From the NCBI RefSeq assembly GCF_963921235.1, contig NC_086101.1:14632001-14696000 (forward strand): a stretch of 64,000 nt of DNA. Reading direction: 5' to 3'. Both the position numbers and the translations under genes were made by a program. The stretch comes from Mobula hypostoma. Its lineage: Eukaryota. Positions 3,563 through 53,871 of the stretch are shown here, piece after piece (position 1 is the stretch's first letter; each line of letters begins with the position of its first letter). Under the pieces are notes generated by a model. The model saw only the letters and a list, made by a program, of their open reading frames with translations. It ran no database searches and was not told the origin of the DNA.

Positions 3563-3619
3563 GTGGCCGCCAAACCATGCTGTGGAGTACGATTGTTTTG
3601 TCAGTGCTGTTGTTCAACA
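3563..3619 (+). CDS. Leader (signal peptide) exon of NCR3/NKp30-like gene 1; ATG at 3577, MLWSTIVLSVLLFN plus a phase-1 base
   Basis: Acceptor cttcatttacag (AG 3561-3562), ccATG start, 14 mostly hydrophobic codons, donor A|gtaagt at 3620. Same 57-nt length, ATG offset and phase as the gene 2 leader exon (49870-49926). Confidence 0.75.
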
Positions 3620-4029
3620 GTAAGTAATGATATCACCGAGTCTCTTCCCACATTGCAAAGACATATTGGTTAGTACGTTAGATGGCCATTTTTAATTGAC
3701 TTGTGATTAGCCCAGGGTTGAATTGGTAAGCTGTTGAGCGTCGCGGCTCGTTGGGCCAGAACGGCCTGTTCAACGATGTATCTCCAAGTAAACGAGCGAA
3801 TATAAAAATAAGAATATGTATACTGTATACACACACACACACACGAGTAATAACAGATAGCAGGTACATAATTTCCATATCAAGCACGCTACATGACGCC
3901 CAGTTAAAGTATTATAATCTGCTGCGACTCGCTTGTTTAGTTTTGTAAATATCAGTTATTAGCCAGTATTTTCACAAAGAGCCCCGTATTTCCATGAGTA
4001 TCGAACAGTGACGTTACATATTAAGAAGT

Positions 4030-6020
4030 GATACCTATTTGAACTGTAGTGTACAAAGGATGTTGCAAATCTGGTCAAGAAGTAAAGGAAAGCTTATGAA
4101 AGGTTCAAAAAGCTGGGTAATGATACAGAGCTAGAAGATTAAAAGACTAGCAAGAAGGAGCTCAGGAAAGACCTTGGCGGACAGGATTAAGGAAATCTCC
4201 AAGGCATTCTACAAGTATGTGAAGAGCAAGAGGATAAGATGTGAGAGAATAGGATCAATCAAGTGTGACAGTGGAAAAGTGTGTATGGAACCGAACAGAT
4301 TGCAGAGATACTTAATGAGTACTTTGCTTCAGTATTCACTACGGAAAAGGATCTTGGCGATTGTAGGGATGACTTACAGCGGACTGAAAAGCTTGAGCAT
4401 GTAGATATTAAAAAACGTGGATGTGCAGAGGGCTTTTGGAAATCAGCAAGTTGAATAAGTCTCTGGGAACGGAAGAGATGTACCACAAGCTACTGTGGGA
4501 GGCGAGGAAGGAGATTGCTGAGCCTCTTGCAAGGATCTTTACATCATCAATGGGGACAGGAGAGGTTTTGGAGGATTGAAGGATTGCAGTTGTTGTTCCC
4601 TTATTCAAGAAAGTGAGTAAAGATAGCTCAGGAAATTATAGACCAGCGAGTCTTACTTCAGTGGTTGGTAGGTTGATGGAAAAGATCCTGAGAGGTAGGA
4701 TTTATGAACATTTGGAGAGGCATAATATGATTAGGAATAGTCAGCATGGCTTTGTCAAAATTAGGTCGTACCTTACGAGCCTGATTGAATTTCTTGAGGA
4801 TGTGAGTAAGCACATAGATGATGGTAGAGCCGTAGATGTACTGAATATGGATTTCAGCAAGGCATTTGATAAGTTCCCCCATGCAAGGCTTATTGAGAAA
4901 GTAAGGAGGCATGGGATCCAAGTGAACATTGTTTTGCAGATCCAGAATTGGCTTGATCGCAGAAGGCAAAAAGTGGTTGTAGACGGGTCATATTCTGCAT
5001 GCAAGTCGATGACCATTGGTGTGCCTCAGGGATCTGTTCTGGGACTCCTTCTTTTCGTGAAGTTTATGAATGACCTGGATGGGGAAGTGGAGGGACGGGT
5101 TAGCAAATTTGCTGATGACGCAAAGGTTGGGTGTGTTGTGTATAGTGTGGAGGGCTGTTAGAGGTTACAGCGGGACATCGATAGGTTGCAAAACTGGGCT
5201 CAGAAGTGGCAGATGGAGTGCAACCCAGATACGTTGAAGAGGTTCATTTTGGTAGGTCAAATACGATGGCAGAATATATTATTAATGGTAAGACTCTTGG
5301 CAGTGTGGAGGATCAGAGGGATCTTGGGGTCCGAATCCATAGGACACTCAAAGCTGCTGTGCAGGTTGACTCTATGGTTAAGAAGGCATACGGTTCATTG
5401 GACTTCATCAATCGTGGGATTGAGTTTAATAGCTGAGAGGTAATGATGCAGCTATATAGGACCCTGGTCAGACCCCACTTGGAGTACTGTTCTCAGTTCT
5501 GGTCGCCTCACTACAGGAAGGATGTGGAAGCCATAGAAAGGGTGCAGAGGAGATTTACAAGGATGTTGCCTAGAATGGGGAGCATGCCTTTTGAGAATAG
5601 GTTGAGTGAACTCGGCCTTTTCTCCTTGGAGTGATGGAGGATGAGAGGTGACCTGATAGATGTGATAAGATGATGTGAAACATTGACCGTGTGGATAGTG
5701 AGAGGCGTTTTCTCAGGGCTGAAATGGCTAATACGAGAGGGCACAGTTTTAAGGTGCTTGGAAGTAGGTACAGAGGAGTTGTCAGGGGTAAGTTTTTTAG
5801 GCAGAGAGAGGTGAGTGCATGGAATGGGCTGCCAGCGACGGTGGTGGAGGTGGATACTATAGGGTCCTTTCAGAGATTCCTGGACAGGAACATGGAGCTT
5901 AGAAAAGCAGAGGGTATGAGTAACCTTAGGTGAAAAATTCTAAGTAAGTCCTGTTCGGCACAGCTTTGTGGGCCGAAGGACCTCTATTGTGTTGTAGGTT
6001 TTCTTTGTTGCTATGTTATC
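4030..6020 (+). mobile_element. CR1 LINE, 5'-truncated, degenerate
   Basis: ORFs 4613-5161, 5206-5436, 5443-5634 and 5691-5933 carry RT motifs (QHGFVK, DFSKAFDK, GVPQGSVLG, FADDAK); CR1 3' end gggccgaaggacct...ttttct. Confidence 0.93.
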
Positions 6021-6319
6021 AAAAAAGGCTATGCACATACCGGTTCTCCAGAGTTGGTTCAGAAGCGACTGGCTAGGAATAAATTCAGTACCCTGTAACT
6101 TGATTTCAGATTTTAACTCTTTCTACTAAAACGGTCGGGTGGGATGGGGCGGGGGCGGGGTGCGGTGGGCAGAGACAATGCAATTATACAGGACTTAGAA
6201 TTAACTTCTGCAGCCTTCAGGTAATTCATGTTGCTGGGATATAAGATATTGTTTGGATTGACCAATCTCCCCCTGCTTTTAATTGCAGGTGTGTAACAAT
6301 TAAAAGTGTTATCGCAGTT

Positions 6320-7846
6320 AGTCATAGTCATACTTTATTAATCCCGGGGGAAATTGGTTTTCGTTACAGTTGCTCCATAAATAATAAATAGTAATAGAAC
6401 CATAAATAGTTAAATAGGAATACGTAAATTATGCCAGTCAATTATGAAATAAGTCCAGGACCACCCTGTTGGCTCAGGGTGTCTGACCCTCCAAGGGAGG
6501 AGTTGTAAAGTTTGATGGCCACAGGCAGGAATTACTTCCTATGATGCTCAGTGCTGCATCTCGGTGGAATGAGTCTCTGGCTGAATGTACTCCTGTGCCC
6601 ACCCAGTACATTATGTAGTGGATGGGAGACATTGACCAAGATGGCATGCAACTTGGACAGCAACCTCTTTTCAGACACCACCATCAGAGAGTCCAGTTCC
6701 ATCCCCACAACATCACTGGCCTTACGAATGAGTTTGTTGATTCTGTTGGTGTCTCAGCCTGCTGCCCCAGCACACAACAGCAAACATGATAGCACTGGTC
6801 ACCACAGACTCGTAGAACAGCCTCAGCATCGTCCGGCAGATGTGAAAGGACCTCAGTCTCCTCAGGAAATAGAGACGGCTCTGACCCTTCTTGCAGACAG
6901 CCTCAGTGTTCTTTGACCAGTCCAGTTTATTGTCAATTCATATCCCCGGTATTTGTAATCCTCCAGCATGTCCACACTGACCCCCTGAATGGAAACAGGG
7001 GTCACTGGTGCCTTAGATCTCCTCAGGTCTACCTCCAGCTCTTTAGTCTTTTTCACATTAAACTGCAGATAATTCTGCTCACACCATGTGACAAAGTTTC
7101 CTACCGTAGCCCTGTACTCAGCCTCATCTCCCTTGCTGATGCATCCAACTATGGCAGAGTCATCAGAAAACTTCTGAAGATGACAAGACTCTGTGCAGTA
7201 GTTGAAGTCCGGGGTGTAAATGGTGAAGAGAAAGGGAGACAAGACAGTCCCCTGTGGAGCCCCAGTGCTGCTGATCACTCTGTCGGACACACAGTGTTGC
7301 TAGCACACGTACTGTGGTCTGCCAGTCAGGTAATCAAGAATCCATGACACCAGAGAAGCATCCACCTGCATCGCAGTCAGCTTCTCCTCCAGCAGAGCAG
7401 GGTGGATGGTGTTGAACGCACTGGAGAAGTCAAAAAACATGACCCTCACAGTGCTCGCTGGCTTGTCCAGGTGGGCGTAGACACGGTTCAGCAGGTAGAC
7501 GATGGCATCCTCAACTCCTAGTCAGGGCTGGTAGGCGAACTGGAGGGGATCTAAGTGTGGTCTGAACATAGGCCGGACCAGCTCCAGAACAAGTCTCTCC
7601 AGGGTCTTCACGATGTGGGAGGTCAATGCCACCGGTCTGTAGTCATTGAGGCCGCTGGGGCGTGGCGTCTTCGGCACAGGGACGAAGCAGGACGTCTTCC
7701 GCATTACAGGAACCCTCGGGAGCCTCAGGCTCAGGGTGAATACATGGCGAAGTACTCCACATAGCTGAGGGGCACAGGCTTTGAGCACCCTGGTGCTGAC
7801 ACCATCCGGTCCTGCAGCCTTGCTTGGGTTGAGACGTTTCAGCTGT
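6320..7846 (-). mobile_element. Rex1/Babar-like LINE, 5'-truncated
   Basis: ORFs 7522-7788 (DYRPVALTSHIVKTLERL, LDPLQFAY) and 6862-7290 (GAPQGTVLSPFLF, FSDD); 3' end gtcatagtcatactttatt. Confidence 0.85.
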
Positions 7847-8984
7847 AACCCTGGAGTTACAAATAAGAAATAAATATGTTCACAGCAAAGTACATCAGAT
7901 TCACGCCGCTATAGATTCTTCCTGATGCACAGACAGCAAGTAGGATGTGATTTGACTAAGCAACACAGAAGCTAAATAGGTATGGTTTCCTTGGCGCCAA
8001 ATAGCAACAGGGTAATAGTAAAATTACGAACTTATAGTCAGTTTTTGTTTAGCAACATATGTTAGTAGGTCAGCATTGCCCTTTACGCGCTAGAACATGT
8101 GCTTGGGAGGAGATGTCGGGAGAACTCGTCCGGTGTTCCTTTACTTTAGACAGATCAAAGGAATATATGGACTTGGGAAATCGAAGCCTGAGGCTGCGAA
8201 TCCACGAGTCCACAGGAGACTGCAGTCCTGGGGTTAAGGCATATAAGTGGCAGGGAGAAGGGAAGGAGGAACGTGGCTTGTACTGCTGCTGTTGCTTTAT
8301 CCCTTGTCATGTTCTGTTTGTCCTGTTTTGTGTTGTTCGCCTCAGCATGGTGGACATGCTATTAGCGCTGGAGTGTGTGGTGACACTGACGGGCAATTCC
8401 CCCGCAAGTCCTGGTGTGGGTTAGCCGTTAACTCGAATGACGTAGTTCTCTGTATGTTTCAATATACGTATGACAATTGTATCTTAATCACAAACAGAAG
8501 GTATCAACTGGCCGCTTTACAATAACCACTCCATGGAAAGTTTTGTTACTGTTGATACCTGGATGACAAGTTGAAATCTAGTGTAAAAGCCTTAAGCTGT
8601 TCTATGCACGGTTCAGTAGTAGTCCAGACAACTCGATGAAAAGTTTCAAAGAAGGGGGTTTAGCTAATTGTGTTATTGCAACTGCTATTGCCCAATTAAA
8701 GAATATCTTGTAATTAATCTTAATCTTAAATAAGCAGCTTGGCGATTTTATATCGCTGAATGTGTCCTCCCCCACGTCAGATAGATGCAGCAGTTGAAAG
8801 AGCAGCATCTATTTTTTTTGTACTATCACAGTAACCTGGCTTGGAAAACGCAACCTTTTATCCCCATTCGTGCTTAGCTGGGCGCAGAGTATCATGGCGC
8901 TGAAATTGTGACTATTAGCGACAGGCGAGGGACCGAACTTTTGGAGGATACCTTTCTTGTTCCGCTGCCTAGGTAAGGCTTTCA

Positions 8985-10330
8985 CAATAAATCAGGAAAT
9001 TATAAGGCGGTGAACCTGACATCAGTAATGAACGTTATTGGAAGGTATCCTAGAGAAACAGATATATATATATTTGGAAAGAAAAAGAGGAATTAGTGAT
9101 GGTCAGCATGGCGTTGTCTGTGGTATGTCCTACCTAACCAATCTTATAGTTTTTCCCGAGGACGTAACCAGAAAAGTTAATGAAGGTAAGACGATGGATG
9201 CAGCCGACATGGACTTCAGCAAGGCACTTGGAAAGATTCCACATGGGAGTTTGGAAACGTTCGGACGCTTGGTATTCACAATAAGGTAGTAAATTGGATT
9301 AGACATTGTCTTTGTGGGAGAAGCCAGAGAGTGGTAGTAAATAATTGCTTCACCAACTGGAGGCCCATCATTAGGGGTGTCACAGGGATCAGTGTTGGGT
9401 CCACTGTTTTTTGTCATCTATATCAATGATCTGGATGATAACGTGGTTAATTGGATCAGCAGATTTACGGGTGGCACCTAGATTGGGAGTGTAGTGGACA
9501 GCTCAGGAGACTTTTAGTGCTTGAAATAGGATTCGGACCAGCTGGAAGTATGGGCTGAAAAATGGAGACAAGTGCGAGGCGTTGCACTTTGGTGGGACCA
9601 CCCAATGCGGGTCTTACACTGTGAAAGAGTTCAGTAGAACAAAGGGATCAGGGAATACAGGTCTATAGATTAATTAAATTGGCGTCACGGGAAGATAGGG
9701 TCATAAAGAAAGCTTTTGCCACGTTGGCCTTCATAAATGACAGTATTGAGTACAGGAGATGGGATGTTATATTGAAATTGTACTTGATGTTGATGAGGCC
9801 TAATTAGGAGTATTGTGTGCACTTACCTATAGGAGAGGTGTAAACAAGATTGAAAGAGTACAGAGAAAATTTCACAGAATGTTGCCGGGACTGGAGGGCC
9901 TGAATTATAAGGAAAGATTGAATAGGTTAGGACGTTATTTCTCGGAACGTAGAAGATTGGGGGGAGATTTGATAGCTGTGTACAAAATGATGAGGGATAT
10001 GGATCGGGTAAATGCAAGTTGGCGTTTTCCACTGAGGGTGAGTGGGACTACAACAAGTCGTTGGTTAAAGGTTAATTGGTACATGAGGGGAAACTTCTTC
10101 ACGCAGAGATCGTGAGAGTCTGAAATGTGTTGTCAGCGTAGGTGGCGCATGCGAGCTCGATTTCAACGTTTAAGAGCGGTTTGGATAGGTACGTGGATAG
10201 TAGAGGTATTAATGGCAATGGTCCGGGTGCAGGTCGATGGGACTAGACGGTTTAAATGGTTCTGCACGGACTAGATAGGCCGAAGGGCCTGCTTTCTGCT
10301 GTAATATTCTATCATTCCATGACTCTGTAT
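8985..10330 (+). mobile_element. Old degenerate CR1 LINE ending just upstream of the V1 acceptor
   Basis: ORFs 9038-9289 (DFSKALGK) and 9813-10115 (IERVQRKFHRMLPGLEGL); 3' end gggcctgctttctgctgtaatattctatcattccatgactct. Confidence 0.85.
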
Positions 10331-10340
10331 CTAGTTTTAG

Positions 10341-10685
10341 GAACCGCCGGCATCCCAATAACAATCAGGCAATCGCCGCAGCGTGTTACCGTTGCCGAAG
10401 GAGAGACGGTGGAACTATATTGTACTTATATCCGAAATGCAACCCACTTCAGGGGAAGTGTGACTGGAACATTGAGTTGGTACAAAGACGTGGAAGACCG
10501 TTCCGATTGCTGCACATGCAGAGGGTATAAAGGTCGCGTTCAGCAAAACAATTTTCCGGATTTTCAAAGGTCATCTATCAGAATCACCCATCTCAGAATG
10601 AACGATTCGGGAGTGTATTACTGCCAACTGAATGTTTCCCTTGGTGGAACATATCTTGGAAACGGGTCAGGAGTCACAGTCATAC
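10341..10685 (+). CDS. NCR3: Ig V-set (joined VJ-type) exon V1, NCR3/NKp30-like
   Basis: Acceptor ttttag| at 10340, donor C|gtaagt at 10686, 345 nt, phase 1-1. V-set hallmarks: EGETVELYC, SWYKD, GRV, LRMNDSGVYYC, J-like LGNGSGVTV in the same exon. Family assignment is by motif resemblance, not a search. Confidence 0.85.
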
Positions 10686-11146
10686 GTAAGTTTACGCGAT
10701 GTTACCTTCGGGTTCTGTGCTTTACCCACCATTATCAGAATTTGCCCAGTCGGGTTCATGCCGTGGTAGAAACACAACTACAAAATATATTTTCATCCAT
10801 CCTCGCTTTGGGTCCCACTTCCGTACGTTATAACACCAGGATTACTCTGCCAGGCACTACTGTTAATTTCTGGATTGCAAGTTGAAATCCAGAGAGAAAG
10901 ATAATTACAGTAGCCTGAAACTCTTTCTTGCGTAGTTCAGTGATAGTTCAAGCATCTCGGCGAAAAGAAATTATGAAGAGGGTTTAAATAATTGTCTTGT
11001 TTCAACCGCTGATTCTTTCTTGGTGTTTCGGCCTTGAACTACCTTTGAAATAACGTTTTGTTACTAGTACAATTAACGTTAAGTGTCGTATCAATTAACT
11101 TTGCATCCATGTTCCCCAAGGTTATGACCTTTCTGCTAAAGGAAAC

Positions 11147-11675
11147 ATACTCAGTGGATCTTTTACACCTGTACACCTGCTACTTAATGCAAATATCTAA
11201 TCAGCCAATCAAGTGGCAGCAACTCAATGGAGACACAGTCAAGTGGTTCACTTAACCGTGGGGAAGAAATGTGACATAAGTGATTTTAACTGTAAAATTA
11301 TTGTTAGTGCCAGGCGGAGTTGTTTGATATCTCAGAAAGTGTGGATCTCCTGAAAATTTCCCTCGCCACTGCTTCTAGAGTTCACAGAGAATGGCGAACA
11401 AATCTTAAAAAAGTAAGCGGCACTTCTCTGTATCTAAGCGCGTTGTTAATGAAAGGGAACATAGGAGAATGGCCAGAATGGTTCAAGCCGACAGGAAGAC
11501 AACAGTAACTCAAATAATCACGCGTTACAGTATTTCCAAAGAGCATCTCTGAACGTACAGTACGAAGACGAGCCTTCAAATCAATGGGCTACAAAAACAG
11601 AAGTTTATGAACGTAAGCTTAGTGGCCACCTCGTTAGGTACAGGAGATATCTAGCAAAGTGCCGCTGAGTGCGTA
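11147..11675 (+). mobile_element. Tc1-like DNA transposon remnant
   Basis: Terminal repeats ta-ctcagtgg ... gctgagtg-cgta; ORF 11320-11508 and flank resemble the Tc1 N-terminal DNA-binding region (GKKCDI...ISES.DLL..S....SRVHREW). Confidence 0.75.
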
Positions 11676-11816
11676 TTTTCGGTCACCCTCCCTGCCGGTC
11701 CCATATCTGCGGGTTACAACATTAAAAGTATTCGTCCGGGCACTTTTTAGGTGCGGTTCACGAGGAGCACAGCCGAACAGCTTTGATATTGAAATTGACA
11801 TTATGTCGGGATTCAG

Positions 11817-12085
11817 GAACTGGTGGTGTGCGAAGAACTATCAGGCAATCACCTCAATGGGTTACTGTAGGCGTGAAGGGTGTGGGGGCTGTGCAGCTGA
11901 CTTGCTCTCTCAGTTGGACTGCAAGACCTTCGGGAGGGGTGGTGCGGGGAGGGGGGGAGAACAATTATAAATGTCAGCCTGTAAAACGAAGTGGAAAGCC
12001 ATTCCTTTTGCAACACATGCAGCGGGTATAATGGTTGCGTTTTTTATTCTGTTCGGAAACGGAAATGGAACTGCAATCTTGCCGT
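11817..12085 (+). pseudogene. Degenerate V pseudo-exon paralogous to V1/V2
   Basis: Acceptor attcag|GA at 11816, then TGGVRRTIRQSPQWVTVG..AVQLTC. After a frameshift it reads SL*NEVESHSFCNTCSGYNGCV (equivalent of SWYKDVEDRSDCCTCRGYKGRV). The E/F strands are missing, and it ends in FGNGNGT. Confidence 0.75.
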
Positions 12086-12619
12086 CAGGTACAATGTTCT
12101 ACCTACCAGCATCAGAAGTTGTCCCATCAGATTCAGGCTGTTCTGAATGTCGACCACTACTGTCCACGTATCACTCCCCAGCTTCACAATTCAACCCCCT
12201 TTTCCACAACTCACTTCCATAGATGCTGCCTGCCCTGCAAAGTTACTTCAGAATTTTGTGTGTGGGAGACCATTACCGTCCCTTGTCTAAATATATTTAC
12301 AACTATACTTTATCTCGGTTCCATCGTCGCAGATAACCACGCATGAAATGTCCAGCGAGGTACTTTGTAGACAGGGTTCATGCTTCTGCCTCCAAAGAGT
12401 TAATTTCGTAGTGTGCTGACACCGACACAATTAACATGAAAAAAATGTCCTAGTAATTGCCTTTGTACTCATGTATCCCCAAATTATAACTTTTCCACTA
12501 ATTGTAATAAGGTCTTCCTTCACTCCTTATGTCGCTCCTGTCAACAGTATGCACCTAAACCAGCTGTAAAACCGACATCGGTTGAGCTTATTTTATTTAT
12601 AGATATAAGTGCATAAATT

Positions 12620-12931
12620 GTGTGGGCACGTGGCCAAGTGGTTAAGGCATTGGACTAGCGACCTGAAGGTCGTGAGTTCGAGCCCAGCCGAGGCAGTGTG
12701 TTGTGCCCTTGAGCAAGGCACTTAACCACGCGTTTCTCTGCGACGACACTGGTGCCAAGCTGTGTGGGTCCTAATGCCCTTCCCTTGGGCAACATCGGTG
12801 TCGTGGAGAGAGGAGACTTGCAGCATGGGCAACTGCCTGTCTTCCATACAACCTTGCCCAGGCCTGCGCCCTGGAGAGTGAGGACTTTCCAGGCACAGAT
12901 CCATGGTCTCGCAAGACTAACAGATGCCTTA
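12620..12931 (+). mobile_element. tRNA-derived SINE with 13-bp target-site duplication
   Basis: A box tggccaagtggttaagg, B box gagttcgagccc; aagtgcataaatt flanks it at 12607-12619 and 12932-12944. Confidence 0.9.
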
Positions 12932-13843
12932 AAGTGCATAAATTATTACTCCTTATGATTTAAACCTGAATTAAAGCCAAATGGTATTGAATTCGTTCAG
13001 AAAGCAGGATAATGCTTATGGCAGAATGATAGGGTTAACGTATGAAGAGCGTTCGATGATTCTGTCCTGTACGCACAGGGGTTTAGAAGAACGGTGGGAG
13101 TGGGGGGGGTAGGGTGTCTCATTGAAACCTATTGAATATTGAACAGACTAGATAGAGTGGATGTGGAGAAGATGTTTCCTATAGTATTGGCGTCTAGGAC
13201 CAGAGGGTACAGCCTCGGAGTAGAGGAATATCCCATATATCCCATTAGGACAGAGATGCAAGTTCTTGCTTCTCCCTTCCTTTTTATACTGGCTATGTCT
13301 TCTGTATCTTTCAGTCCTCTTGAAGAGTCTTGATCGAAACACTGAAGACATAGGTGTAATTGGCCGACTCGGGCTTGTTGACCAGGAAGGGCTAGTTTCC
13401 GTGCTGTCTAAAAGTACATTTATTATCCGCAAACTATGGACTGATTTCCTATGGAAACAAGTTTGCCCCATTCACTCTGTCTGATCACTATTAATTTCAT
13501 ATACCTAAATAAACAATAAAGCCGACATAACAGCTATGCTTGTTTAATCTGTAGATATGAGTGCATAAATTGAACTAGGACAGAGGTATTATTTATAAAT
13601 AGGACAGAATCTAATCCGAAGGCCAGGCAATGTTTATGACAAATGAGATGATGTAGAGTTATGCTTGCTGTTTACTCCACTTCTATGGAAGGCCATTGCC
13701 GTAACCCGGCGTGGGAAACGCAGCTATTAATCTACATTCATGTTTAACTCATTTGAGAACCTTATAGTGCAACATTCTGATAATTCATGACGAAGACAGC
13801 CACCAAACATTGGCATTCAAATTGTGATTGTTTTTACTTCCAG

Positions 13844-14188
13844 GAAACGTCGGAGTCCCAATAACAGTCAGGCAGTGGCCTCTGTGGGTCACTGTTACTG
13901 AAGGGGAGACGGCTAAATTGAATTGTACCTTCAGCCAGAATACAGTCCATTCGGGACGCAGACTAATCGGAGCCATCAGTTGGTACAAAGACGTGAAAAG
14001 CCGATCCGTTTGCAACATGTGCAGTGAGTATAGTGGTCGCGTTCTGGAAAACACTTCATTTGGCATTCCAAGCGCAACTATCGAAATAAGCGACCTCACG
14101 GTGACAGATACAGGAAGGTATTACTGCCAAGTGGATATATTATTGGAAGGAAAACATTTTGGAAACGGGACGGAAGTCACAGTCATAC
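13844..14188 (+). CDS. NCR3: Ig V-set (joined VJ-type) exon V2, NCR3/NKp30-like
   Basis: Acceptor ttttacttccag| at 13843, donor C|gtaagt at 14189, 345 nt, phase 1-1. EGETAKLNC, SWYKD, DLTVTDTGRYYC, FGNGTEVTV. 53/114 residues identical to V1 by manual gapless alignment. Confidence 0.87.
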
Positions 14189-14419
14189 GTAAGTTTGCAA
14201 TAATTTGTCTTCATTTCCATAGTTCTACCCACCAATATCGTTCTCCCACAAGATGAAAAACAGCTGCATCAATTTAAAAATAAGCGACAGATATTTGGAA
14301 TATAATTAATATTTAAAGGTGGTTACTACTGTTCACAAAGTGAGCTAGATGTTCACTTGGACGAGGTTATCGTGCTACTGGTAATGACAAATTGAATAGA
14401 GACTGGCATTACCACCTTT

Positions 14420-14760
14420 TTCAAATTATTTATTAATTTACGGGATGTGGGTATCGCCACCTCAACCAACATTTATTGCCTGTCCCCAGTTGACCTTGAG
14501 AAGGAGATGATGGGCTGTCGTCTTGAACCGCTGCAGTCCCTGAGGTGTGGGTACACCCACGGTGATCTTAGGGAGGGAATTCCATGATTTTGACCCAGCG
14601 ACAATTAAAGAATGGCGATATGTTTCCAAGTCAGGATGGTGAGTGACTTGGGGGGTGGAATTCAAAGTGGTGGTGTTCCCAAGTATCTGTTGTTCTCGTC
14701 CTTCTAGATGGTACTAGTTGTTGATCTGGAAGGTGCTGCCTTAGGAACATTGGTGTGTTG
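14420..14760 (-). mobile_element. CR1/L2-type LINE 3' fragment
   Basis: ORF 14462-14665 (SKSWNSLP...QRFKTTAHHLLLK) is typical of the CR1/L2 C-terminus. Confidence 0.65.
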
Positions 14761-15439
14761 TTGCAATATATTGGACAATTTGTCAGTGGGGAATGTTTTA
14801 CCCGAACTTTCTAACTAGGCAACAGACGGAATCGCACAACACACGACACAATTTTACAATAGAGGTAATAACTATAATGTTGAGAAAGACGTCAATATTC
14901 TGATCCCGCAAGTTTTTCGATAGTTTTTAGATTAAAGTAAGAAAGCCACATGCATGTTGGTTCATAAAAGTAGATATTGAACAATACTCTGCTTGGTCTA
15001 GGAGCTTGATATCACCTTACAGCCCTTATTAAGATTTGATCGTCATTTCAAACATAGGAAGCTATTTATTCTGGTTATTGGAGCATGTGGCTGCTGAAAT
15101 TGCAGTAATCCTTACCAAACTAATGGTTGCTTTCTAAAGTCATATCCTCCTATTAGGAATTTAAAACAGAGTCGCAAGAACAAACGTAAGGACATAATCG
15201 TAAAGATACCGTGCAAAAAAAAATACATGGGTCTCCGGAGCATTAAAACTAGCATGACAGCCGTTTTTTGTGGGCGAGTTTTTCAGGGCAATTGAGGCAG
15301 AGTAAATGGCAGAATATGACATCTGGGGAAGTTACGTCCAGGTAGTTAACTGCATCTGGATGAAATGGCTATAGTCCACTGTTGCATACTACAATGTACG
15401 TCTCCCTTTATTAGAAGTTACTATGATACTCAAACCACC

Positions 15440-15650
15440 TGTCTGGCACCAACAATCATTCCACGGTCAAAGTCTTTTAAATCACATTTTCCTCCATTCT
15501 GATGTTTGGTCTGAACAACAATTGCACCTCTTGACCATGCCTCCATGCATATATGCATTAAGTTGCTTTCACACGATTGGCTGATTAGATACTTGTATGG
15601 ACGAGCAGTTGTATAGGGGTGACTAATAAAGTGGCTGCTGAGTGTATGTT
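15440..15650 (-). mobile_element. Tc1-like remnant
   Basis: GGKCDLKDFDRGMIVGAR in ORF 15430-15711; terminal repeat ctaataaagtggctgctgagtgta. Confidence 0.75.
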
Positions 15651-17013
15651 TAGCGGTGCACATTAGGTTGAATTTGCTCCACTTGTGTCTCCCTGTTGCG
15701 CGCACAATCAAATTCTGCGAATAGACAATTCTGAAAATAGCAAATAAAACGTTTGTATGAAGGGGTTAGCACTAGCTGAGAAATATTTTTAATGACTCGA
15801 CGTGCATAAAATATTTTTGGAATGCAATGTGACAAGCGCTTCTTTAATTAGGCATACAACATCACGCGTCCATCTGCGGTCAATCTGATTGCAAAACAAC
15901 GCAATATGCCGGTGATCAGAGATAAGACTGCTTTTCCTTTCTATGATAGACATGTCATCTTTAATTTCAAACAATCAAATTAACAGTCCGGAAGTAAATG
16001 GGGAATAATTATGGTTCGAAATGTTCAGTGAAAGTCTGTCGTATAAGCAGAGTACTTGGCAGGGAGCTCAAAAGCAAGAGCAGAGAGAAGTGTAGGGAAC
16101 AGGCAGACAGGCATATACAGAGAGCAAGAGAGAGAGCGAGAGAGAGGGAGAGAGAGAAGAAAAGAAAATGGATAGATAAGACAGGGGTCGGGCAATGTGT
16201 ATCCTACGTCATTAGCTGTCAAATGCGCCATAGAACGATAAATGACCACAAGATTAAATAATCAGTACAATAAAAACTCAATTACTAATCTCGATAGAGA
16301 AAAATTGCTTTAATTGTATTCAATATTCAATCAATAAATTTACTAGAAAATTAAAACAGGACATTTCAAAATGTTGTCTTATCTCATAGAATGAACACTT
16401 GTCAAATCGGAAGTCATAACTATTCGTTGTTGCTGCACAAAACATGGATGCTGTGGAAATGTTTTGGAAAATAATAAAAAATGTGAATATGAAAGTACTA
16501 TTAATCAGGGGAGAGAAACAGGTTGCAAAACCTGAGCAGACTTACACCAACCCTAATATGGAAAAGTCCCGTGTTCCTATACAACATAGACGGAAGCCAC
16601 TTGGTTTATATGTTCTATGCTGGCCCACGGACTAGACCATTTTTCACTAAATCCTCCTGAAACCGACTCTTCCATATTCCTATTAATTATGCTTCACACT
16701 ATAGGTAATATGCAGTTGTGAACTAACTTACAAATCCGCGTCCTTGGCATGAAAGAGGAAACTGGCACAACTGGGAAGAAACCCATGCTGTAACAGAGAT
16801 CTTAGTCTGTACGAAAAATGGGGTGGAGAGGGATAATAAATTTGCCATGGTGAAATGGGGGATAGACTGGAAGGGCCGAATGGTCTTCCAGGGATAGTAG
16901 CTGTGCTAGATACGCTGCTTCCCACGCTCTTGATCTGTGTTAGTATTTTCGTTTATGTAGAAAGATGTAGGCCTCAGAAACGTAGTTAGTGATTCTGATT
17001 GTTTTGTTATCAG

Positions 17014-17174
17014 CAGGCATGAAGGCAACAAACAGCGGTGGAAGGAGCTTATGTTGGCAGCTACTTGAAATGGGAGTGAAACTTATAATATTTCTTGTGA
17101 TCAACATTATAACGGTTCTCTTCATCCGTTCCCAGAGGTCTCGTGGAATTGTCAACAGGAACAAATTAATCTAA
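17014..17174 (+). CDS. Terminal stalk/transmembrane/short cytoplasmic tail exon of gene 1
   Basis: Acceptor ttgttatcag|cag (NAGNAG; both choices phase 1). Encodes GMKATNSGGRSLCWQLLEMGVKLIIFLVINIITVLFIRSQRSRGIVNRNKLI*: a hydrophobic span followed by basic residues and a stop. Confidence 0.75.
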
Positions 17175-21302: not shown

Positions 21303-22483
21303 AAATCCACAACAAATCCTTAACCTGAAAAGACACTCCTCTCCGTGCTCATCAAATACTTTGAAAATATGATGCCATTCACTTTCACTATGTTTCCAGG
21401 CAACGTGTCTTAGAATTGCAGTTGAAAAAATGCCCCTTCTCCGTAATCCATAAATACTATTACTTCGTATCAATGTCTGGTAGTTTTGTTTCGCTGATGT
21501 GAAAGATTTATTTCCTATATATGTGACCTCTAGTTATCCCTTACTTTTCCACATCTCAGCGAAGATTTTTACTAAAGCACATACCAGCTAATCTCTTCTC
21601 ACAGAAACCTAGTAACGTAGAACATAGAAAACCTACAGCACAATGCAGGCCCTTTGGCCCACAATCCTGTGCCGAACATGTACTTACTTTAGAAATTATC
21701 CAGGGTTACCCATTGTCCTCATGATTAGTAGTTTGTAAGTGTTGGCATCACACTTGAACTCGGTTACTATACTGACCCAACCTTGCTAATTCCGTGTCTT
21801 GGTATCGTAGACCTATTGTACGCTAAGCCTCGGCGCAGCAGGGTTCTCAGGAGGTAAATGGGCCTCAGATTGTAGAACCAGACATTGAAAATAATTTGTG
21901 AAAAGATTAAATCGGTTAGAGCAATAAATTGCTGAAATTGAGCTCACATGCATTACTTACGCTAGTGGCTCGTTCAACACTCTTACGAGACCCTGAGTGA
22001 AGAAGTGTTCCCTTACTTTCCCCGTAAACATTTCACGTTCCACGCTTAACCCATGATCTCTAGTTGTAGTCCCACTCAAATTCAGTGGAAAAAGCCTGCT
22101 TGCATTTGCCCTATCCTTCATAATTTTGTACACCTCTACCAAATCTCCTCTCACTTTTACGTTGAAAGGAATGAAGTCCTTACCGACTCAATCTTTCCTT
22201 ATAATGCAGGTCCTCCAGTCCAGACAACATAGAAACATAGAAACATGGAAACGTAGGAAATCTACAGCGCAATACAGGCCCTTTGGCCCACAGAGTTGTG
22301 CCCAACATGCCCCTACTTTAGAAATTACTAGGCTGACCTATAACCCTCTATTTTACTAAGCTCCATGTACCTATCTAAAAGTCACTTAAAAGACCCTATC
22401 ATATCCGCCTCCACCATCGTTGCTGGCAGCCCATTCCACGCACTCACCATTCTCTGCGTAAAAAACTTACCCCTGACATCTCC

Positions 22484-23637
22484 ATCATCCATCATCCCGC
22501 AGAGACTAGTGGAGAAACTGTCGCTGCTTGGCCTGAGCACTGCCATGTGTCGCTGGATTCTGGATTTCTTGACGGAGAGACCACAGTCAGTCCGTGTTGG
22601 CAGGAACATCTCTGACTCCATCACACTGAGCACTGGATCCCCACAAGGCTGTGTGCTTAGCCCATTGCTGTTTACACTGCTAACACATGACTGTGCAGCC
22701 AGATTCAAGGAGAATCTGATCATTAAATTTGCAGATGATACCACAGTGGTGGGGCTCATCAGCAAAAATGATGAAACTATGTACAGGGAGGAGGTCAAAC
22801 ACCTAGCGAGCTGGTGCAGGGATAACAACTTGATGCTTAATGTCACCAAAACCAAGGAGATGATCCTCGATTTCAGACGGTCTCAGCCTGAGCACACACC
22901 CCTCAGCATCAGTCGCTCCACAGTGGAGGGAGTGGAAAACATCAAGTTCCTTGGGGTGCAGATCTCGGACAATCTCACCTTGTCCAGGAACACCACTGGA
23001 ATTGTGAAACGGGCCCAGCAGAGATTGCACTTTCTGAGGAAGCTTAAACAAGCATCACTCCCCACTAACATCTTAACTACATTCTACAGAGGCGTGGTTG
23101 AGAGTGTGCTGACCTTTTGCATCACAACTTGGTACTCCAGCTGTAGTGATGTCGACAAAAAAGCCTTGCAGAGGGTGGTTAGGGGAGCAGAGAAGGTTAT
23201 TGGGGTCTCCCTACCTTCTGTCCAAGACCTCTTTCAGAGTCGATGCCTCCAGAAGACACGATACATCATTAAAGACCCCTCACACCCTCTACATGAACTG
23301 TTTGTTCTTCTGCCATCAGGCAAACGTTACAGGAGCATCAAAACTAAAACCATAAGGCTACTAAACAGCTTCCTCCCACAGGCAGTCAGACTGCTAAATA
23401 GCTGCTCCACCTGACTCTGCTTTGGACACTTTTAACTTGCACTGGACACTTATAACTTGATTTTAACTGACATGTGGCTGTTGTGTTTTACTATTTATTG
23501 TCATGTTTATTATTTAGTGTTGCGTTTGTTATGTTATGATTGCACTGCCCCTGAGAAACGCTGTCTCATTCTGCCCTGCAGAGCTGATGTACGGTTAGAA
23601 TGACAATAAAGTTTTCTGAATCTTGAATCTTGAATCA
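22484..23637 (+). mobile_element. Rex1/Babar-like LINE, 5'-truncated, intact RT C-terminus, inserted in a CR1 tail, present only in copy A
   Basis: ORF 22365-23414 ([28 protein letters not shown]); AATAAA then (TCTTGAA)n tail. Copy B reads ...acatctcc|tctgtacc... uninterrupted at ~59935. Confidence 0.9.
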
Positions 23638-32280: not shown

Positions 32281-33700
32281 AGAAACATAGAAGCATAGAA
32301 AATAGGTGCAGCAGTAGGCCATTCGGCCCTTCGAGCCTACATCACCATTCAGTATGATCATGGCTGATCATCCAACTCAGAACCCTGTACCTGCCTCCTC
32401 TCCATACCCCCCAATCCCATTAGCCACAGGAGCCATATCTAACTCCCTCTTAAATACAGCCAATGAACTGGCCTCAACTGTTTCCTGTGGCAGAGAATTC
32501 TACAGATTCACCACTCTCTGTGTGAAGAAGTTTTACCTCATCTTGGTCCTAAAAGGCTTCCCCTTTCTCCTTAAACTGTGACCTCTCGTTCTGGACTTCC
32601 CCAACATCGGGAACAATCTTCCTGAATCTAGCCTGGCCAATCCCTTTAGAATTTTATACGTTTCAATAAGATTCCCCCTCAATCTTCTAAATTCCAGCGA
32701 GTATAAGCCTAGTCGATCCAGTCTTTCTTCATATGACAGTCCTGCCATCCTAGGAATCAATCTGGTGAACATTCTTTGTGCTCCCTCCATAGCAAGAATG
32801 TCTTTCCTCAGATTAGGGGAACAAAACTGCACACAATACTCCAGGTGTGGTCTCACCAAGGCCTTGTACAACTGCAGTAGAACCTCCCTGCTCCTGTACT
32901 CCAGTCCTCTTGCTATGAATGCCAGCATACCATTCGGCTTTCTCACCGCCTGCTGTACCTGCATGCTCACTTTCAATGACTGGTGTATAATGACACCCAG
33001 GTCTCGTTGCACCTCCCCTTTTCCTAATCTGCCACCATTCAGATAATAATCTGTTTTCCTGGTCTTGCCACCAAAATGGATAACCTCACACTTATCCACA
33101 TTAAATTGCATCTGCCATGAATTTGCCCACTCACCTAACCTATCCAAGTCACCCTGCATCCTCTTAGCATCCTCCTCACAGCTAACACTGCCGCCCAGTT
33201 TCGTGTCATCCGCAAGCTTGGAGGTGCTGCATTTAATTCTCTCGTCTAAGTCATTAATATATATTGTAAACAATTGGGTCCCAGCACTGAGCCCTGCGGT
33301 ACCCCACTAGTCGCTGCCTGCCATTCTAAAAAGGTCCCGTTTATTCCCACTCTTTGCTTCCTTTCTGCCAACCAATTCTCGATCCACATCAAGACCATAT
33401 CCCCAATACCCAGAACCCCACGCAAATATCCCCTGAACATTTGCCACATTTCTTCCGTACGTTTCCCTGAGAACATCTGTTTCCAATTTATGCTTCCAAG
33501 TTCCTGCCTGGCAGCTTCATATTTCCACTTACTCCAATTAAACGCTTCCCTAACTTGTCTGTTCCTATCCCTCTCCGAAGCTATGGTAAAGGAGTTAGAA
33601 TTGTGATCTGTATCTCCAAAATGCTCTCCTACTGAGAGACCTGACATCTGACCAGGTTAACTTCCCAATACCAGATCAAGTACAGCTTCTCCTCTTGTAC
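32281..33700 (-). mobile_element. CR1 fragments: second subfamily (32281-~33410) joined to an endonuclease-region fragment of the first subfamily (~33410-33700)
   Basis: ORF 32533-33273 closely resembles the end of ORF 57235-59247; ORF 33246-33647 switches from the linker/endonuclease region (EHFGDTDHNS) into RT (DMVLMWIENWL). Confidence 0.85.
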
Positions 33701-34099
33701 TGGTCTGTTTTCACTTCCCATTCTCTGTTACACTGGTAACGTTCTGAGACCATTGAACAATTTTGGGAGCGTCATTTTGTTTCTAAGTTAAATTTCCCAT
33801 ATTGTGAAACATTTCACAGTTCCTCCTGCTGACGGCAACATCAGCAGAAGTGTTCCATCGTAGTTGTTTCTCAAGAAACCCCCTGAGTTCTGCATCAACA
33901 AGATATTGTCTGTATTTCGCCTGGTTGTGATCTTAACCTAAAGTTAACAGAGGAAAAAAAAATCAGGATCAAGTGTATGAACACTGACGTATGTAGTAAA
34001 ATTTATTGTTTTACGGCACCAGTACGGTGCAATGCATGCAATATAAGGGAGGGGGGAGGGAGAGAGAGAGTGGGGGGGGAGTCTGTCTCTCTGTCTGTA

Positions 34100-34198
34100 C
34101 CTTGTTTTACGGCGGTTGGCATCCAGCTTAATGGTGCATTACCGCCACCCTCTGCTCCAGAATGTGCACGAGACATACATTCTAAATCCCTTCACCCA

Positions 34199-34236
<38 letters not shown>

Positions 34237-37200
34237 CTACACTTCACCCTCCCATCTTTGACCATCCTAGTATCCTATTCCTGTTTATTCATCATATTCT
34301 ATAAAAAACCCCTGTACCCCTTAAAAATGCTAAAAATACCCGGACTTGTGCTCTCTCACGTGTGCCCAGCAACCCTTTTAATGTGAATTCCTGCATCCCC
34401 AACTCCCTTAATTTATTTCTCATCATCTCGCTCTGTATCCCATACTTCCTGCAACACAAAACTACATGGTCTACTGACCCCTCTTCCTGACATTCCTCAC
34501 ACAATCCTGTCTGGTGTTTCCTTATCATTTTCAATGTTTTGTTTAATGCACAATGCCCCAGCCTTAACCTAGTCCACACAATTTCCTCTCTTCTGTTTCC
34601 ATTACCTACCCTAGTAACTGCAACACTCTTTTGTATTTGATATAAATGCCCCCCTTTCCCCTCCCTGTCCCATCTTTCTTGCCACATTCGGTTGACTTTT
34701 TCCCAGATTACACACTTAACCTCTGCTTTACTGATACTAATGTGCATTTCCACATTTTCTTTCTTTAATGCCCTCTTTGCCAACTCATCCACCCTCTCAT
34801 TCCGCTTCACCCCTACATGTGCTGGAACCCATAGAAATTTTACCTGACCTCCCTGATTTGCAATTCTTGTAACTAACTGAAGGACTTCATAAAGTACATC
34901 TTGCCGACTGTTTGTGTGAAAAGACCTTAAACTTGCTAGAACTGAGGATGAATCTGAACATATCAATGCTTTGGCTTGTCTGGCTTTCTGCACCCATCGC
35001 AACGCAACCAACACTGGCAGCATCTCCACTGTAAACACCCCTAACTTATTAGATGTTCTTCTGCTGATTCTAATTTCTTTTGCTGGTATTACCACCCCAA
35101 ACCCTGTCACTCCTGTTTCAGGTTCCTTCGCACCATCCGTATAAATGTGAGTATAATCACTATACTTTTCCATCACATGACAGTTAAATGCATTTACCAA
35201 ATCTGTTTTATATCTTTCTTTCCTTTTTACCTCTAACAAATGCCAGTCTATGTCAGGCCATACAAGCTTCCATGGAGCTACAACCGGATAAACTACTGAA
35301 GGACTTATCCTCAGATCAAATACTCCACATTCTTTCGCGATATCATTCCCTACCCGACTAAAGGTATCCCTCTGAAACCTCCCATTTTCCCAGCACTCCT
35401 GCAACACTCCTTTAGTAGGGTGAGAATCATTGTGCCCCTGCAAGTTAGCCCAGTAGTTTGCCATCAGTTGCATCCTTCTTAGTTCCAAAGGCATTATTCC
35501 CATTTCTACCTGTAGTGCTGACACTGGTGACGTTTTAAAAGCCCCACTGCACACTCTCAAGGCCTGAGCCTGAATCACATCCAGTTTCCTTATAAGAGAC
35601 CTAGCTGCTGATCCATATACTATATTTCCATAATCCAATACAGATCTTACTAAAGCCACATACATTCTCTTCAAAGCTGAACAACTTGCTCCACATTCCT
35701 TACCAGTCAAACATCTCATCACATTTATTACTTTTTTACATTTCTCCTCAACTTTCCTGATATGGTCTGCCCATGTTAATCGTGAATCAAATATAACTCC
35801 CAGAAATTTAAATGATGCAACCCTTTCTAATTCAACCCCATACATCCTTAACTTCTTCCCTACCTCAACCCTTTTCCTGGTAAAAAGTATAGTTTGAGTT
35901 TTGTCTACTGAAAATCTACATCCTCAATCATAACCCCAATCCACCACTTCATCAATTGCTTCTTGTAGTTTCCTGATTATATGGTCCATGTTCCTGCCTC
36001 TTTTCCACAAGGCCCCATCATCCGCAAACAGTGACCTACCTATATCCACTGGTACCTTTGTGAAGACATCATTGATCATAATGATGAAAAGTAACGGGCT
36101 AATCACACTACCTTGAGGTGTGCCATTTTCCACTATGTACTGTTTTGATAATTCTGATCCAATCTGAACTTGAATTTTTCTACCAAACAAAAAATCTTTA
36201 ATCCAATTAAAAACTCTCCCACCAACCCCCATCTTGTGCAGTTTAATTAATAATCCTTCCTTCCACATCATATCATAGGCTTTTTCAATGTCAAAGAACA
36301 CTGCCACTACTGACTCTCTATTTGCCTGGGCCTTCCTTATTTCAGTCTCTAACATAATCACTGAGTCCATGGAATTCCTTCCCTTTCTAAAACCACTCTG
36401 ATAACTTGCCAGCATTCCCCTTTTCTCAAGCTCATATGATAACCTTTCTGTTATCATCCTTTCCATTATCTTACATATACTTGATGTTAATGCAATTGGT
36501 CTGTAGCTAGTGGGTTTTGACAGATCTTTGCCAGGCTTCCTTATTGGAATTACTACTGCTTCTTTCCATGCACTTGGTAATCTTCCCTCCTCCCACACTC
36601 TGTTATAAAAATGCAGCAACTTCAAGAGCGCACCTTCTCCTAGATTTTTTTTAGCATCACAGAGCATATCAGATCTTTCCCTGGGGAGGTTGGTCTCGAT
36701 CTCTTTATTGCTCTCACCATTTCTGCTAATGTAAATGGATCATCAATTATATCATCTGTTCCTCCCCTCCTGCTTAACACACCTGGGTGTTGGCTCATTA
36801 TTCTTTCCCTTCTTCTTCTCTCTTCTTCAGACAAATTTTCTGAACTGTGTATCAGTACAAGTGACTTGGCCATGACCTCAGCCTTATCCCTACTGGAGAC
36901 AGCAGTTTCCTCCTCAGATATCATTATTGGATATTCCCATTCCCTTCTATCTCCTCCCATCCTCTTAATCATTCCCCGTATCTCTCCCACAGGTGTTGTT
37001 CTTCCTACCTTGTCGCAAAATCTCCTCCAACTTGCCCTTTTAGCTTGACATATAGTTCTTCTCACCACTGCCTGTGCTTTCTTATATTGAACCAAATGCT
37101 GCATATTATGGGTTCTTTTAACTAGCCTGAATGCTCTATTTCTGTTTTTTACAGCCTGACAACATTCCTCTGTCCACCATGGTACCAGTTTTCTATTCAT

Positions 37201-49869: not shown

Positions 49870-49926
49870 GCATCCGCCGAACTATGACGTGGTATGAGTT
49901 CGTATGTTTATTGCTGTTGTTCTCTG
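49870..49926 (+). CDS. Leader exon of NCR3/NKp30-like gene 2; ATG at 49884, MTWYEFVCLLLLFS plus a phase-1 base
   Basis: Acceptor tttttctatag (AG 49868-49869), 14 codons, donor G|gtaag at 49927; 57 nt like the gene 1 leader exon. Confidence 0.75.
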
Positions 49927-49931
49927 GTAAG

Positions 49932-52949: not shown

Positions 52950-53291
52950 GAGCTGCCAGAGCTAACGGAATAAGCCACCAATGGCCGGAGCGGATCATGG
53001 TTACTGAAGGGGGCACGGCGCAGCTGAGTTGTGCTTACATCAGTAATATAAACGTTGCAAAGAAGTGGGTCGGATCCCTTACCTGGTACAAAGACGAGGA
53101 ACGCGGTACCGTTTGCAACAAGTGCAGTGGGTTTCATGGTCGCGTAACGACGAACAGTTCAGGAGGCTTTCTTCACCAAACTTTACAAATCGTTAACGTC
53201 AGAATGAACGATACAGGAAAGTATTACTGCAAAGTACAAATTTTCGACAAGGGAAGTTATCTTGGCAAAGGGACAGAAGTTCAAGTCACAA
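52950..53291 (+). CDS. NCR3: Ig V-set (joined VJ-type) exon V3, NCR3/NKp30-like
   Basis: Acceptor tttccggttacag| at 52949, donor A|gtaagt at 53292, 342 nt, phase 1-1. EGGTAQLSC, TWYKD, GRV, VRMNDTGKYYC, LGKGTEVQV. Confidence 0.87.
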
Positions 53292-53710: not shown

Positions 53711-53871
53711 CAGGCAGGAAGGCAACAAAAAGCGGCGGAAGGAGCTTATGTTGGCAGCTACTTGAAATGGGAGTGAAACTTATAATATTTCTTGTGATCA
53801 ACATTGTAACGGTTCTCTTCATCCGTTCCCAGAGGTCTCGTGGAATTGTCAACAGGAACAAATTAATCTAA
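53711..53871 (+). CDS. Terminal stalk/TM/short-tail exon of gene 2
   Basis: Acceptor ttgttatcag|; GRKATKSGGRSLCWQLLEMGVKLIIFLVINIVTVLFIRSQRSRGIVNRNKLI*; 4 nt and 3 aa differ from the gene 1 copy. Confidence 0.77.

Follow-up and report, generated by a model that had tools for sequence, protein, structure and literature searches.

The window analysed here, a stretch of 64,000 nucleotides of Mobula hypostoma DNA, contains two NCR3-like genes and, besides these, only retrotransposon ORFs. In the first gene (Table 1) one leader exon is followed by an intact V-set exon (V1), a dead V exon, a second intact V-set exon (V2) and one exon encoding stalk, transmembrane (TM) segment and tail. These five elements had all been recognized in a first-pass annotation of the sequence, and they were confirmed with small corrections of coordinates. 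The second gene lies downstream and possesses a leader, a V exon (V3) and a TM exon of its own, the last being 94% identical to the TM exon of the first gene.

Table 1 Exons of the two NCR3-like genes in the window
Feature	Position	Strand	Remarks
Leader (signal-peptide) exon, coding part	3577..3619	+	ATG at 3577; 43 coding nt, phase 1, donor gtaagt
V1 exon, VJ-type V-set	10335..10685	+	Pfam V-set E 3e-13; contig starts, splice joint, collinearity
Dead V exon	11817..12088	+	272 nt; homologous pieces in three different frames, with stops
V2 exon, VJ-type V-set	13844..14188	+	Pfam V-set E 1e-11; contigs in runs X1-X3
Stalk/TM/tail exon	17014..17174	+	Tandem acceptor 17014 or 17017; stop 17172-17174
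Downstream gene, leader exon	49884..49928		
Downstream gene, V3 exon	52950..53291		
Downstream gene, TM exon	about 53711..53871		

The translation of the leader exon, MLWSTIVLSVLLFN, is identical in sequence comparison to the N-terminus of isoforms X1-X3 of the Mobula birostris gene discussed below, and the exon may start at an acceptor near 3564. As first delimited, V1 and V2 were both intact 345-nt V-set exons of phase 1-1. V1 is indeed present and intact, but its acceptor, formerly placed at 10341, is located at 10335 by RNA; this adds six in-frame nucleotides, the junction reads N-I-L-G-T-A-G and the resulting product is collinear with the proteins P0158 and P0155. In both V1 and V2 the V segment and a J-like F/L-G-x-G-T/S-x-V-T-V motif lie together in a single non-rearranging exon of 345-351 nt, as in VJ-type domains (the C-termini are YLGNGSGVTVI in V1 and HFGNGTEVTVI in V2). 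The two domains share 47% identity, in line with the earlier estimate of about 46%. V1 keeps all canonical V residues (both Cys, the Trp, YYC and the GxG J-motif) and is intact in two Mobula species; its donor is good and matches the V2 donor exactly. The dead V, on the other hand, has lost its D-F strand region, including the second Cys, and its YYC region.

The TM exon begins with a tandem cag|cag acceptor (NAGNAG), used at 17014 or 17017. Translation verified that all three combinations L-V1-V2-TM, L-V1-TM and L-V2-TM are in frame; the first is a real product of 299 or 298 aa, rather than of the 297 aa originally predicted, and L-V2-TM is 182 aa long. In the two-V isoform V1 is membrane-distal and V2, which is part of every annotated isoform, is membrane-proximal. 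As the first-pass annotation had maintained, tblastn of the leader and TM exons detected no further copy of either in the 3.6-17 kb region, and the interval 10686-13843 between the V exons contained no leader- or TM-like sequence.

Transcripts and the orthologue in M. birostris

Contigs from public RNA runs were aligned to positions 10300-16299 of the window, so that V1, the dead V and V2 were covered; the leader and TM exons lie outside this stretch, and the junctions L>V1, L>V2 and V2>TM were deduced from the RefSeq isoforms together with the length of overhangs and single matched bases. Contig coverage sits on exons while non-repeat intron bins are empty, which indicates that the runs are RNA. 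Where contigs and window differ in a base, the resulting residues are precisely those found in the M. birostris proteins and, judged by these differences, runs X1-X3 are from M. birostris or match it. The RNA support comes from the sister species and not from M. hypostoma itself; the one run labelled as M. hypostoma (X11) yielded an unspliced piece of V1 only, with no V2.

The joint 10685>13844, by which V1 is spliced directly to V2, was among the junctions proposed for verification and was found, with GT..AG ends, in contigs of runs X2 and X3. A run X3 contig of 1140 nt comprises about 390 nt upstream, V1, V2 and then 51 nt. Contig alignments in runs X1 and X3 begin at 10334, and contigs extend one matching base past 14188, which fits the acceptor at 17017. 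Another contig, from run X1, consists of 28 unplaced nucleotides followed by V2. The first base that it matches is compatible with a leader whose last base is G, which is the case in M. birostris, and the contig probably represents the L>V2 junction. The k-mer depths of V1 and V2 contigs, to be taken only as a rough guide, are alike (11.6/19.3, 7.0/8.6 and 14.5/14.5), suggesting that V1-containing RNA is not rare. Over the dead V (11700-12099) contig depth was zero and no joint touched this exon, so that its use in these transcripts was rejected.

RefSeq annotates in M. birostris one gene with three isoforms: X1 (299 aa, XP_072113490.1) and X2 (298 aa, XP_072113491.1), both L-V1-V2-TM and called 'polymeric immunoglobulin receptor-like', and X3 (182 aa, XP_072113492.1), which is L-V2-TM and called 'NCR3-like'. 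Translations of the window have the same lengths as X1, X2 and X3, are collinear with them and differ by 9, 9 and 5 residues respectively, and X1 and X2 differ from each other exactly by the NAGNAG choice (PGM versus RM). This gene is the orthologue, with the same exon plan, the same isoform lengths, a similar span (coding sequence over 13,961 bp in M. birostris and 13,598 bp in the window) and 97% identity. It should be noted, however, that it exists as an automatic model only, whose two-V isoforms bear a misleading name, and that RefSeq may have drawn on these very RNA runs, in which case the two lines of evidence would perhaps not be independent. The M. hypostoma protein set apparently has no model of the gene, the 90% cluster consisting of M. 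birostris members only.

Between the two Mobula species V1 shows four replacements and two silent changes, and V2 one of each, counts that are too few to separate selection from relaxation. Three of the four V1 replacements are in loop regions (CDR1-like, C'-C'' and CDR3-like) and not in the core.

Family placement of the V domains

The NKp30/NCR3-like identity proposed from the sequence was borne out by profile, by sequence matches and by the tree. V2 matches human NKp30 chains (3NOI, 3PV6, 6YJP and 9FWW) with E about 2e-8, and V1 matches nurse-shark NCR3 (P0052, QTT61904.1) with E 8e-9 and 42% identity. In the phylogeny both domains group within the elasmobranch NCR3 clade and do not form a lineage of their own: they nest in a starred clade of 17 rows (99/95) together with Heterodontus NCR3-like, outside which stand looser, unstarred clades with great white (92/82) and with nurse shark and sturgeon NCR3 (93/94). 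A further CxxC occurs in the C'-C'' region of each batoid V. V2 is 89% identical to the NCR3-like protein of H. akajei, where only L-V2-TM is annotated, so that the use of V1 may be restricted to Mobula. The branch of V1 is long, and among annotated proteins its orthologues are confined to Mobula.

The pIgR name given to the two-V isoforms was rejected. The tail has 15 aa, whereas pIgR has a long cytoplasmic one with sorting signals; leader, V2 and TM are common to the NCR3-like isoform, and the V domains cluster with NCR3; matches to pIgR D1 (E about 6e-9) are no better than generic V-domain matches.

The AlphaFold prediction (mean pLDDT 76) shows a TM helix besides two V-type beta sandwiches, the geometry between domains being unreliable at a pTM of 0.42. 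A Foldseek search of this model against the PDB retrieved only scFv/diabody chains, with a fit of 9-12 Å rmsd for diabody/triabody versus about 22 Å for scFv, a difference that, at that pTM, carries no weight for the arrangement of the domains.

Interpretation and comparison with known receptors

We interpret the locus as a two-V receptor gene of the NKp30/NCR3 family in which V2 is a constitutive exon and V1 a cassette that can be skipped, a reading to which we assign a probability of about 0.72. Of the two readings initially put forward for the gene, that of a two-V NKp30 relative agrees with both RNA contigs and RefSeq isoforms, whereas mutually exclusive V choice is unsupported, since no L-V1-TM was found. 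What stands of the proposed alternative V-exon use is the existence of L-V2-TM, as RefSeq isoform X3 and probably as the run X1 contig.

V1 could instead be a decaying duplicate exon, its inclusion being splicing noise that happens to keep the frame and the only functional product being the one-V form. The single one-V annotation in H. akajei, the long branch and Mobula-only orthologues of V1, its larger amino-acid change between the two Mobula species and the neighbouring V copy that is already dead are all compatible with decay; nevertheless we judge it unlikely, given that V1 is intact in two species with every canonical residue, has a donor as good as that of V2, is assembled at depths like those of V2 and is modelled in RefSeq isoforms X1 and X2, and that its replacements fall mostly in loops. 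Less probable still is a free or mutually exclusive choice of V exons, in which L-V1-TM and L-V2-TM would serve as one-V alternatives that bind different ligands, the two-V form being a minor product. The frame permits every combination, L-V2-TM is annotated, and a V1>TM junction would fall outside the stretch to which contigs were aligned. However, no L-V1-TM isoform appears in M. birostris RefSeq, none of the proteins of 63-200 aa among 5.8 billion shares at least three 5-mers with V1, and V1 is joined to V2 in two runs, a single contig of run X3 spanning both exons, with depths (as a rough guide) that are similar for the two. The Dscam-like logic of exactly one array exon per mRNA was rejected, considering that V1 and V2 occur in one contig and that no L-V1-TM product was found. 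Finally, V1 and V2 could be parts of two genes, divided by a leader or TM exon that escaped recognition. One-V NCR3-like genes in tandem are common in the cluster, and the downstream gene comes with its own leader and an almost identical TM exon, but this idea is rejected by the direct V1>V2 splice with canonical ends, by the lack of leader- or TM-like sequence in the interval between them and by the single leader and TM exon common to the three RefSeq isoforms.

Under the two-V reading, tandem duplication of a V exon would have produced V1, the now-dead V and V2. Splicing of leader, V1, V2 and TM would give a type I membrane protein whose two VJ-type V domains are joined at the exon boundary by roughly one residue, skipping of V1 would give a classical one-V NKp30-like chain, and the tandem acceptor of the TM exon would add a one-residue variant. 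The TM segment holds a Lys, with a Glu shortly before it (...EMGVKLIIFLV...), and the tail of 15 aa has no ITIM or ITAM. Mammalian NKp30 pairs with an ITAM adaptor, either CD3zeta or FcRgamma; from the TM lysine and the short, motif-free tail it is predicted that the Mobula protein is an activating receptor, most likely signalling in the same way through an ITAM-bearing adaptor.

With V1 included, the tip farthest from the membrane would be a different V domain, one that changes faster. As the CDR-like loops of a V domain adjoin its N-terminus, V1 would cover just this face of V2, and the isoforms should consequently differ in ligand or reach. Since the linker between V1 and V2 is nearly absent, the two V domains would not pair within one chain, and the two-V form might assemble head-to-tail in a diabody-like manner. 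More tentatively, inclusion of V1 could be a regulated switch by which one germline gene provides two receptors for NK-like or T cells, a RAG-independent diversification by cassette V exons, and the repeated, independent occurrence of two-, three- and five-V NCR3-like genes among sharks and rays could reflect a general strategy of the family; we regard this as possible rather than probable.

To our knowledge NKp30 stands alone among NK receptors in being conserved between sharks and humans, and it may be a relative of the V domain invaded by RAG. A literature search, with incomplete coverage of the shark NCR3 literature, returned nothing relevant on NKp30 V domains in cartilaginous fish or on Mobula NCR3. 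The gene is already modelled in the public annotation of M. birostris and is a modest variant, not a new kind of system; it offers nonetheless a concrete example, open to testing, of an ectodomain diversified through exon duplication and splicing in the oldest jawed vertebrates. Annotation problems come to light as well, as automatic pipelines name such genes pIgR-like and this one is apparently absent from the M. hypostoma protein set.

With mammalian NKp30 and nurse-shark NCR3 the Mobula gene has in common a non-rearranging V with a J-like GxG in the same exon, the leader-V-TM plan, a basic TM residue and a short tail. The differences are in the TM charge, which is Lys here and Arg in human NKp30, and in the ectodomain: textbook NKp30 has a single V domain, whereas the main Mobula transcript encodes two in tandem, the first of them optional, and only the 182-aa isoform with V1 skipped has one extracellular V per chain. 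The locus of the sawfish Pristis pectinata (L001) has a one-V gene with no second V within 10 kb on either side. Other elasmobranch NCR3-like models likewise have a single leader followed by several NKp30-type V domains, namely a five-V model in M. hypostoma (XP_062903898.1), two-V models in Pristiophorus and Scyliorhinus and a three-V model in Heterodontus; the Pristiophorus X1 model ends with a similar Lys-bearing TM segment. In the tree the V domains of these models fall outside the batoid clade holding V1 and V2, so that the duplications were independent. The extra V of the Mobula gene described here is old, divergent and demonstrably optional.

Exon structure and splicing of gene 1

Gene 1, the NKp30/NCR3-like gene, is one gene with an optional V1 exon, a constitutive V2 exon and a NAGNAG variant at the TM exon. 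The leader, V1, dead V (a disrupted copy between the two intact V exons), V2 and TM exon described in the first-pass annotation are all present in the window sequence (see table). Both intact exons match the Pfam V-set model (E 3e-13 for V1, 1e-11 for V2) and are only 47% identical, against ~46% estimated earlier. A tblastn search of 3.6-17 kb with the leader and TM peptides found no extra copy of either, in agreement with the claim that no second leader or TM exon lies amid the V exons. Homology among the V units reaches a short way into the flanking introns, which fits tandem duplication of a V exon together with its flanks.

Features of the two NCR3-like genes and of the rest of the window (window coordinates)
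Feature	Position	Remarks
Leader, gene 1	ATG 3577, exon end 3619	donor gtaagt; 43 coding nt, phase 1
V1 exon	acceptor 10335, end 10685	open, phase 1-1, donor ATAC/gtaagt
CxxC in V1	10505-10520	DCCTC
Dead V	11817-12088	272 nt, three recognisable pieces in three frames, stops, second-cysteine region absent
V2 exon	13844-14188	open, phase 1-1, donor ATAC/gtaagt, same as V1
CxxC in V2	14008-14023	VCNMC
TM/tail exon, gene 1	stop 17172-17174	short stalk, TM segment with lysine, 15-residue tail
Leader, gene 2	49884-49928	adjoins N run at 49932
V3, gene 2	52950-53291
TM exon, gene 2	~53711/53714-53871
CxxC in other batoid V		V3 VCNKC; sawfish VCATC; H. akajei VCNKC
Retrotransposon ORFs	22365-23414, 32533-39407, 57235-59247	reverse transcriptase, RNase H, endonuclease

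Contigs from three small public RNA runs of one organism (runs X1-X3), aligned to window positions 10300-16299 only, contain both V1 and V2 in each run. They span these exons and leave the non-repeat intron bins empty, from which it follows that the runs are spliced RNA (the run label itself is guessed). The junction 10685>13844, proposed earlier as a check, was found with GT..AG ends in runs X2 and X3, and a 1140-nt contig of X3 carries ~390 nt of upstream sequence, V1, V2 and then 51 nt more; V1 and V2 are therefore exons of one mRNA. For the dead V, coverage and joints in these contigs were both zero. One contig of run X1 has 28 unplaced nt followed by V2 alone, and since it first matches at a G, the base on which the M. 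birostris leader ends, it probably carries the leader>V2 junction, that is, skipping of V1. Alignments to V1 in runs X1 and X3 start at 10334, which moves the V1 acceptor from 10341 to 10335 (ctag/TTTTAG); at the TM-exon acceptor cag/cag, the downstream member fits V2 alignments extending one base beyond 14188. All base differences of the contigs give the M. birostris residue, so the RNA organism is M. birostris or cannot be told apart from it.

Interspersed repeats within the introns (11100-11700, 12500-13300, 14500-14900 and 15300-15700) are also covered, in each of the four runs aligned, at k-mer depths ranging from thousands to tens of thousands. Joints between opposite strands connect ~11229 with ~15489-15548, which points to a single, abundantly transcribed repeat family present in inverted copies.

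The orthologue of gene 1 is already known as an automatic model in M. birostris, where one gene with three isoforms was recovered using the H. akajei homologue as query, the isoforms being of 299 and 298 aa (X1 and X2, named pIgR-like) and 182 aa (X3, named NCR3-like). Translation of the window sequence gives exactly these lengths when acceptor 10335 is combined with 17014 or 17017, and the products differ at 9, 9 and 5 residues respectively; the CDS spans 13,961 bp in M. birostris and 13,598 bp in the window. The two-V receptor anticipated by the first-pass annotation is thus borne out by the V1>V2 splice and the two longer isoforms, at 299/298 rather than 297 aa. Its alternative V choice held in part: leader-V2-TM is annotated (182 aa), but no leader-V1-TM isoform is annotated in M. 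birostris and no protein of 63-200 aa among 5.8 billion shares at least three 5-mers with V1. A mutually exclusive exon system is not supported for this gene, in which one contig carries V1 and V2 together. In H. akajei only leader-V2-TM is annotated (181 aa, V2 89% identical), over a similar gene span of 11.85 kb. The 90% identity cluster of gene 1 proteins has M. birostris members only, so gene 1 seems absent from the protein set of M. hypostoma.

Family placement of the V domains

The NKp30/NCR3 identity proposed earlier is supported by matches of V2 to human NKp30 structures (E about 2e-8) and of V1 to nurse-shark NCR3 (QTT61904.1, E 8e-9), and by a maximum-likelihood tree built from 38 V domains. 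In this tree the batoid V domains all fall together (100/99), and with Heterodontus NCR3-like they lie inside a starred clade of 17 rows (99/95); NCR3 of great white, nurse shark and sturgeon is added only in wider, unstarred clades (92/82, 93/94). V2 clusters with H. akajei, V1 has a long branch and is present in Mobula only, and the single sawfish V is about equally far from V1, V2 and V3. The V domains of Pristiophorus (two V), Heterodontus (three V), Scyliorhinus (two V), a five-V M. hypostoma gene and a frog two-V gene fall outside the batoid clade, which indicates that V multiplication happened repeatedly. The pIgR identity was rejected because of the short tail, the NCR3 V domains and the exons common with the NCR3-like isoform.

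In the C'-C'' region every batoid V domain of the clade has an additional CxxC pair, which may form a further disulfide or a metal site. In a representative library the best HMMER match of V1 came from the archaeon Methanolapillus millepedarum, a 7,432-aa protein named 'immunoglobulin domain-containing' (E 3e-64, 34 matched stretches, the best covering query residues 2-36 only), an odd giant Ig-repeat protein whose score is probably repeat-inflated.

Gene 2 and the rest of the window

V3 and its TM exon are parts of a separate one-V NCR3-like gene. Its V domain is identical to M. hypostoma XP_062903490.1, the gene also matches the isoforms of that protein, and its span of 3,988 bp is that annotated in GCA_963921235.1; the window is accordingly assigned to the lesser devil ray. 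The two TM exons are 94% identical in protein while V3 is only ~42% identical to V1/V2, suggesting recent exon copying or gene conversion. A stalk cysteine (17040-17045, ...RSLCWQ...) is present in both window TM exons and is arginine in both M. birostris genes; judging from the sequence, this membrane-proximal free cysteine could allow disulfide-linked dimers in M. hypostoma only. Outside the two genes are retrotransposon ORFs, one of whose reverse transcriptases also matches the ALKBH8_N Pfam model.

Proposed function and comparison with known systems

NKp30 and other activating receptors are the basis for inferring adaptor pairing from TM charge and tail. By this analogy, the TM lysine and motif-less tail would make the product of gene 1 an activating receptor that pairs with an acidic ITAM adaptor. 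V1 and V2 meet almost without a linker (...VTVI-R-NVGVP...) and the N-terminus of a V domain adjoins the CDR-like loops; V1 is therefore expected on the top face of V2, as a putative distal recognition module, and the one-V and two-V isoforms likely differ in ligand or reach. The AlphaFold model (pLDDT 76) comprises two sandwiches of V type and a TM helix, with unreliable domain orientation (pTM 0.42), and Foldseek against the PDB matched scFv and diabody chains only. Comparison of the two Mobula species shows four replacements in V1, three of them in loop regions, and two silent changes, and in V2 one of each; the pattern is suggestive, but these counts are far too small for a test.

No description of two-V NKp30 genes was found in the literature searched, which did not extend to Kinlein et al. 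2021. Gene 1 would act much as NKp30 does, and it fits the NKp30/NCR3 family by every sequence criterion tested save the one-V architecture, a plan that its main, two-V isoform breaks.
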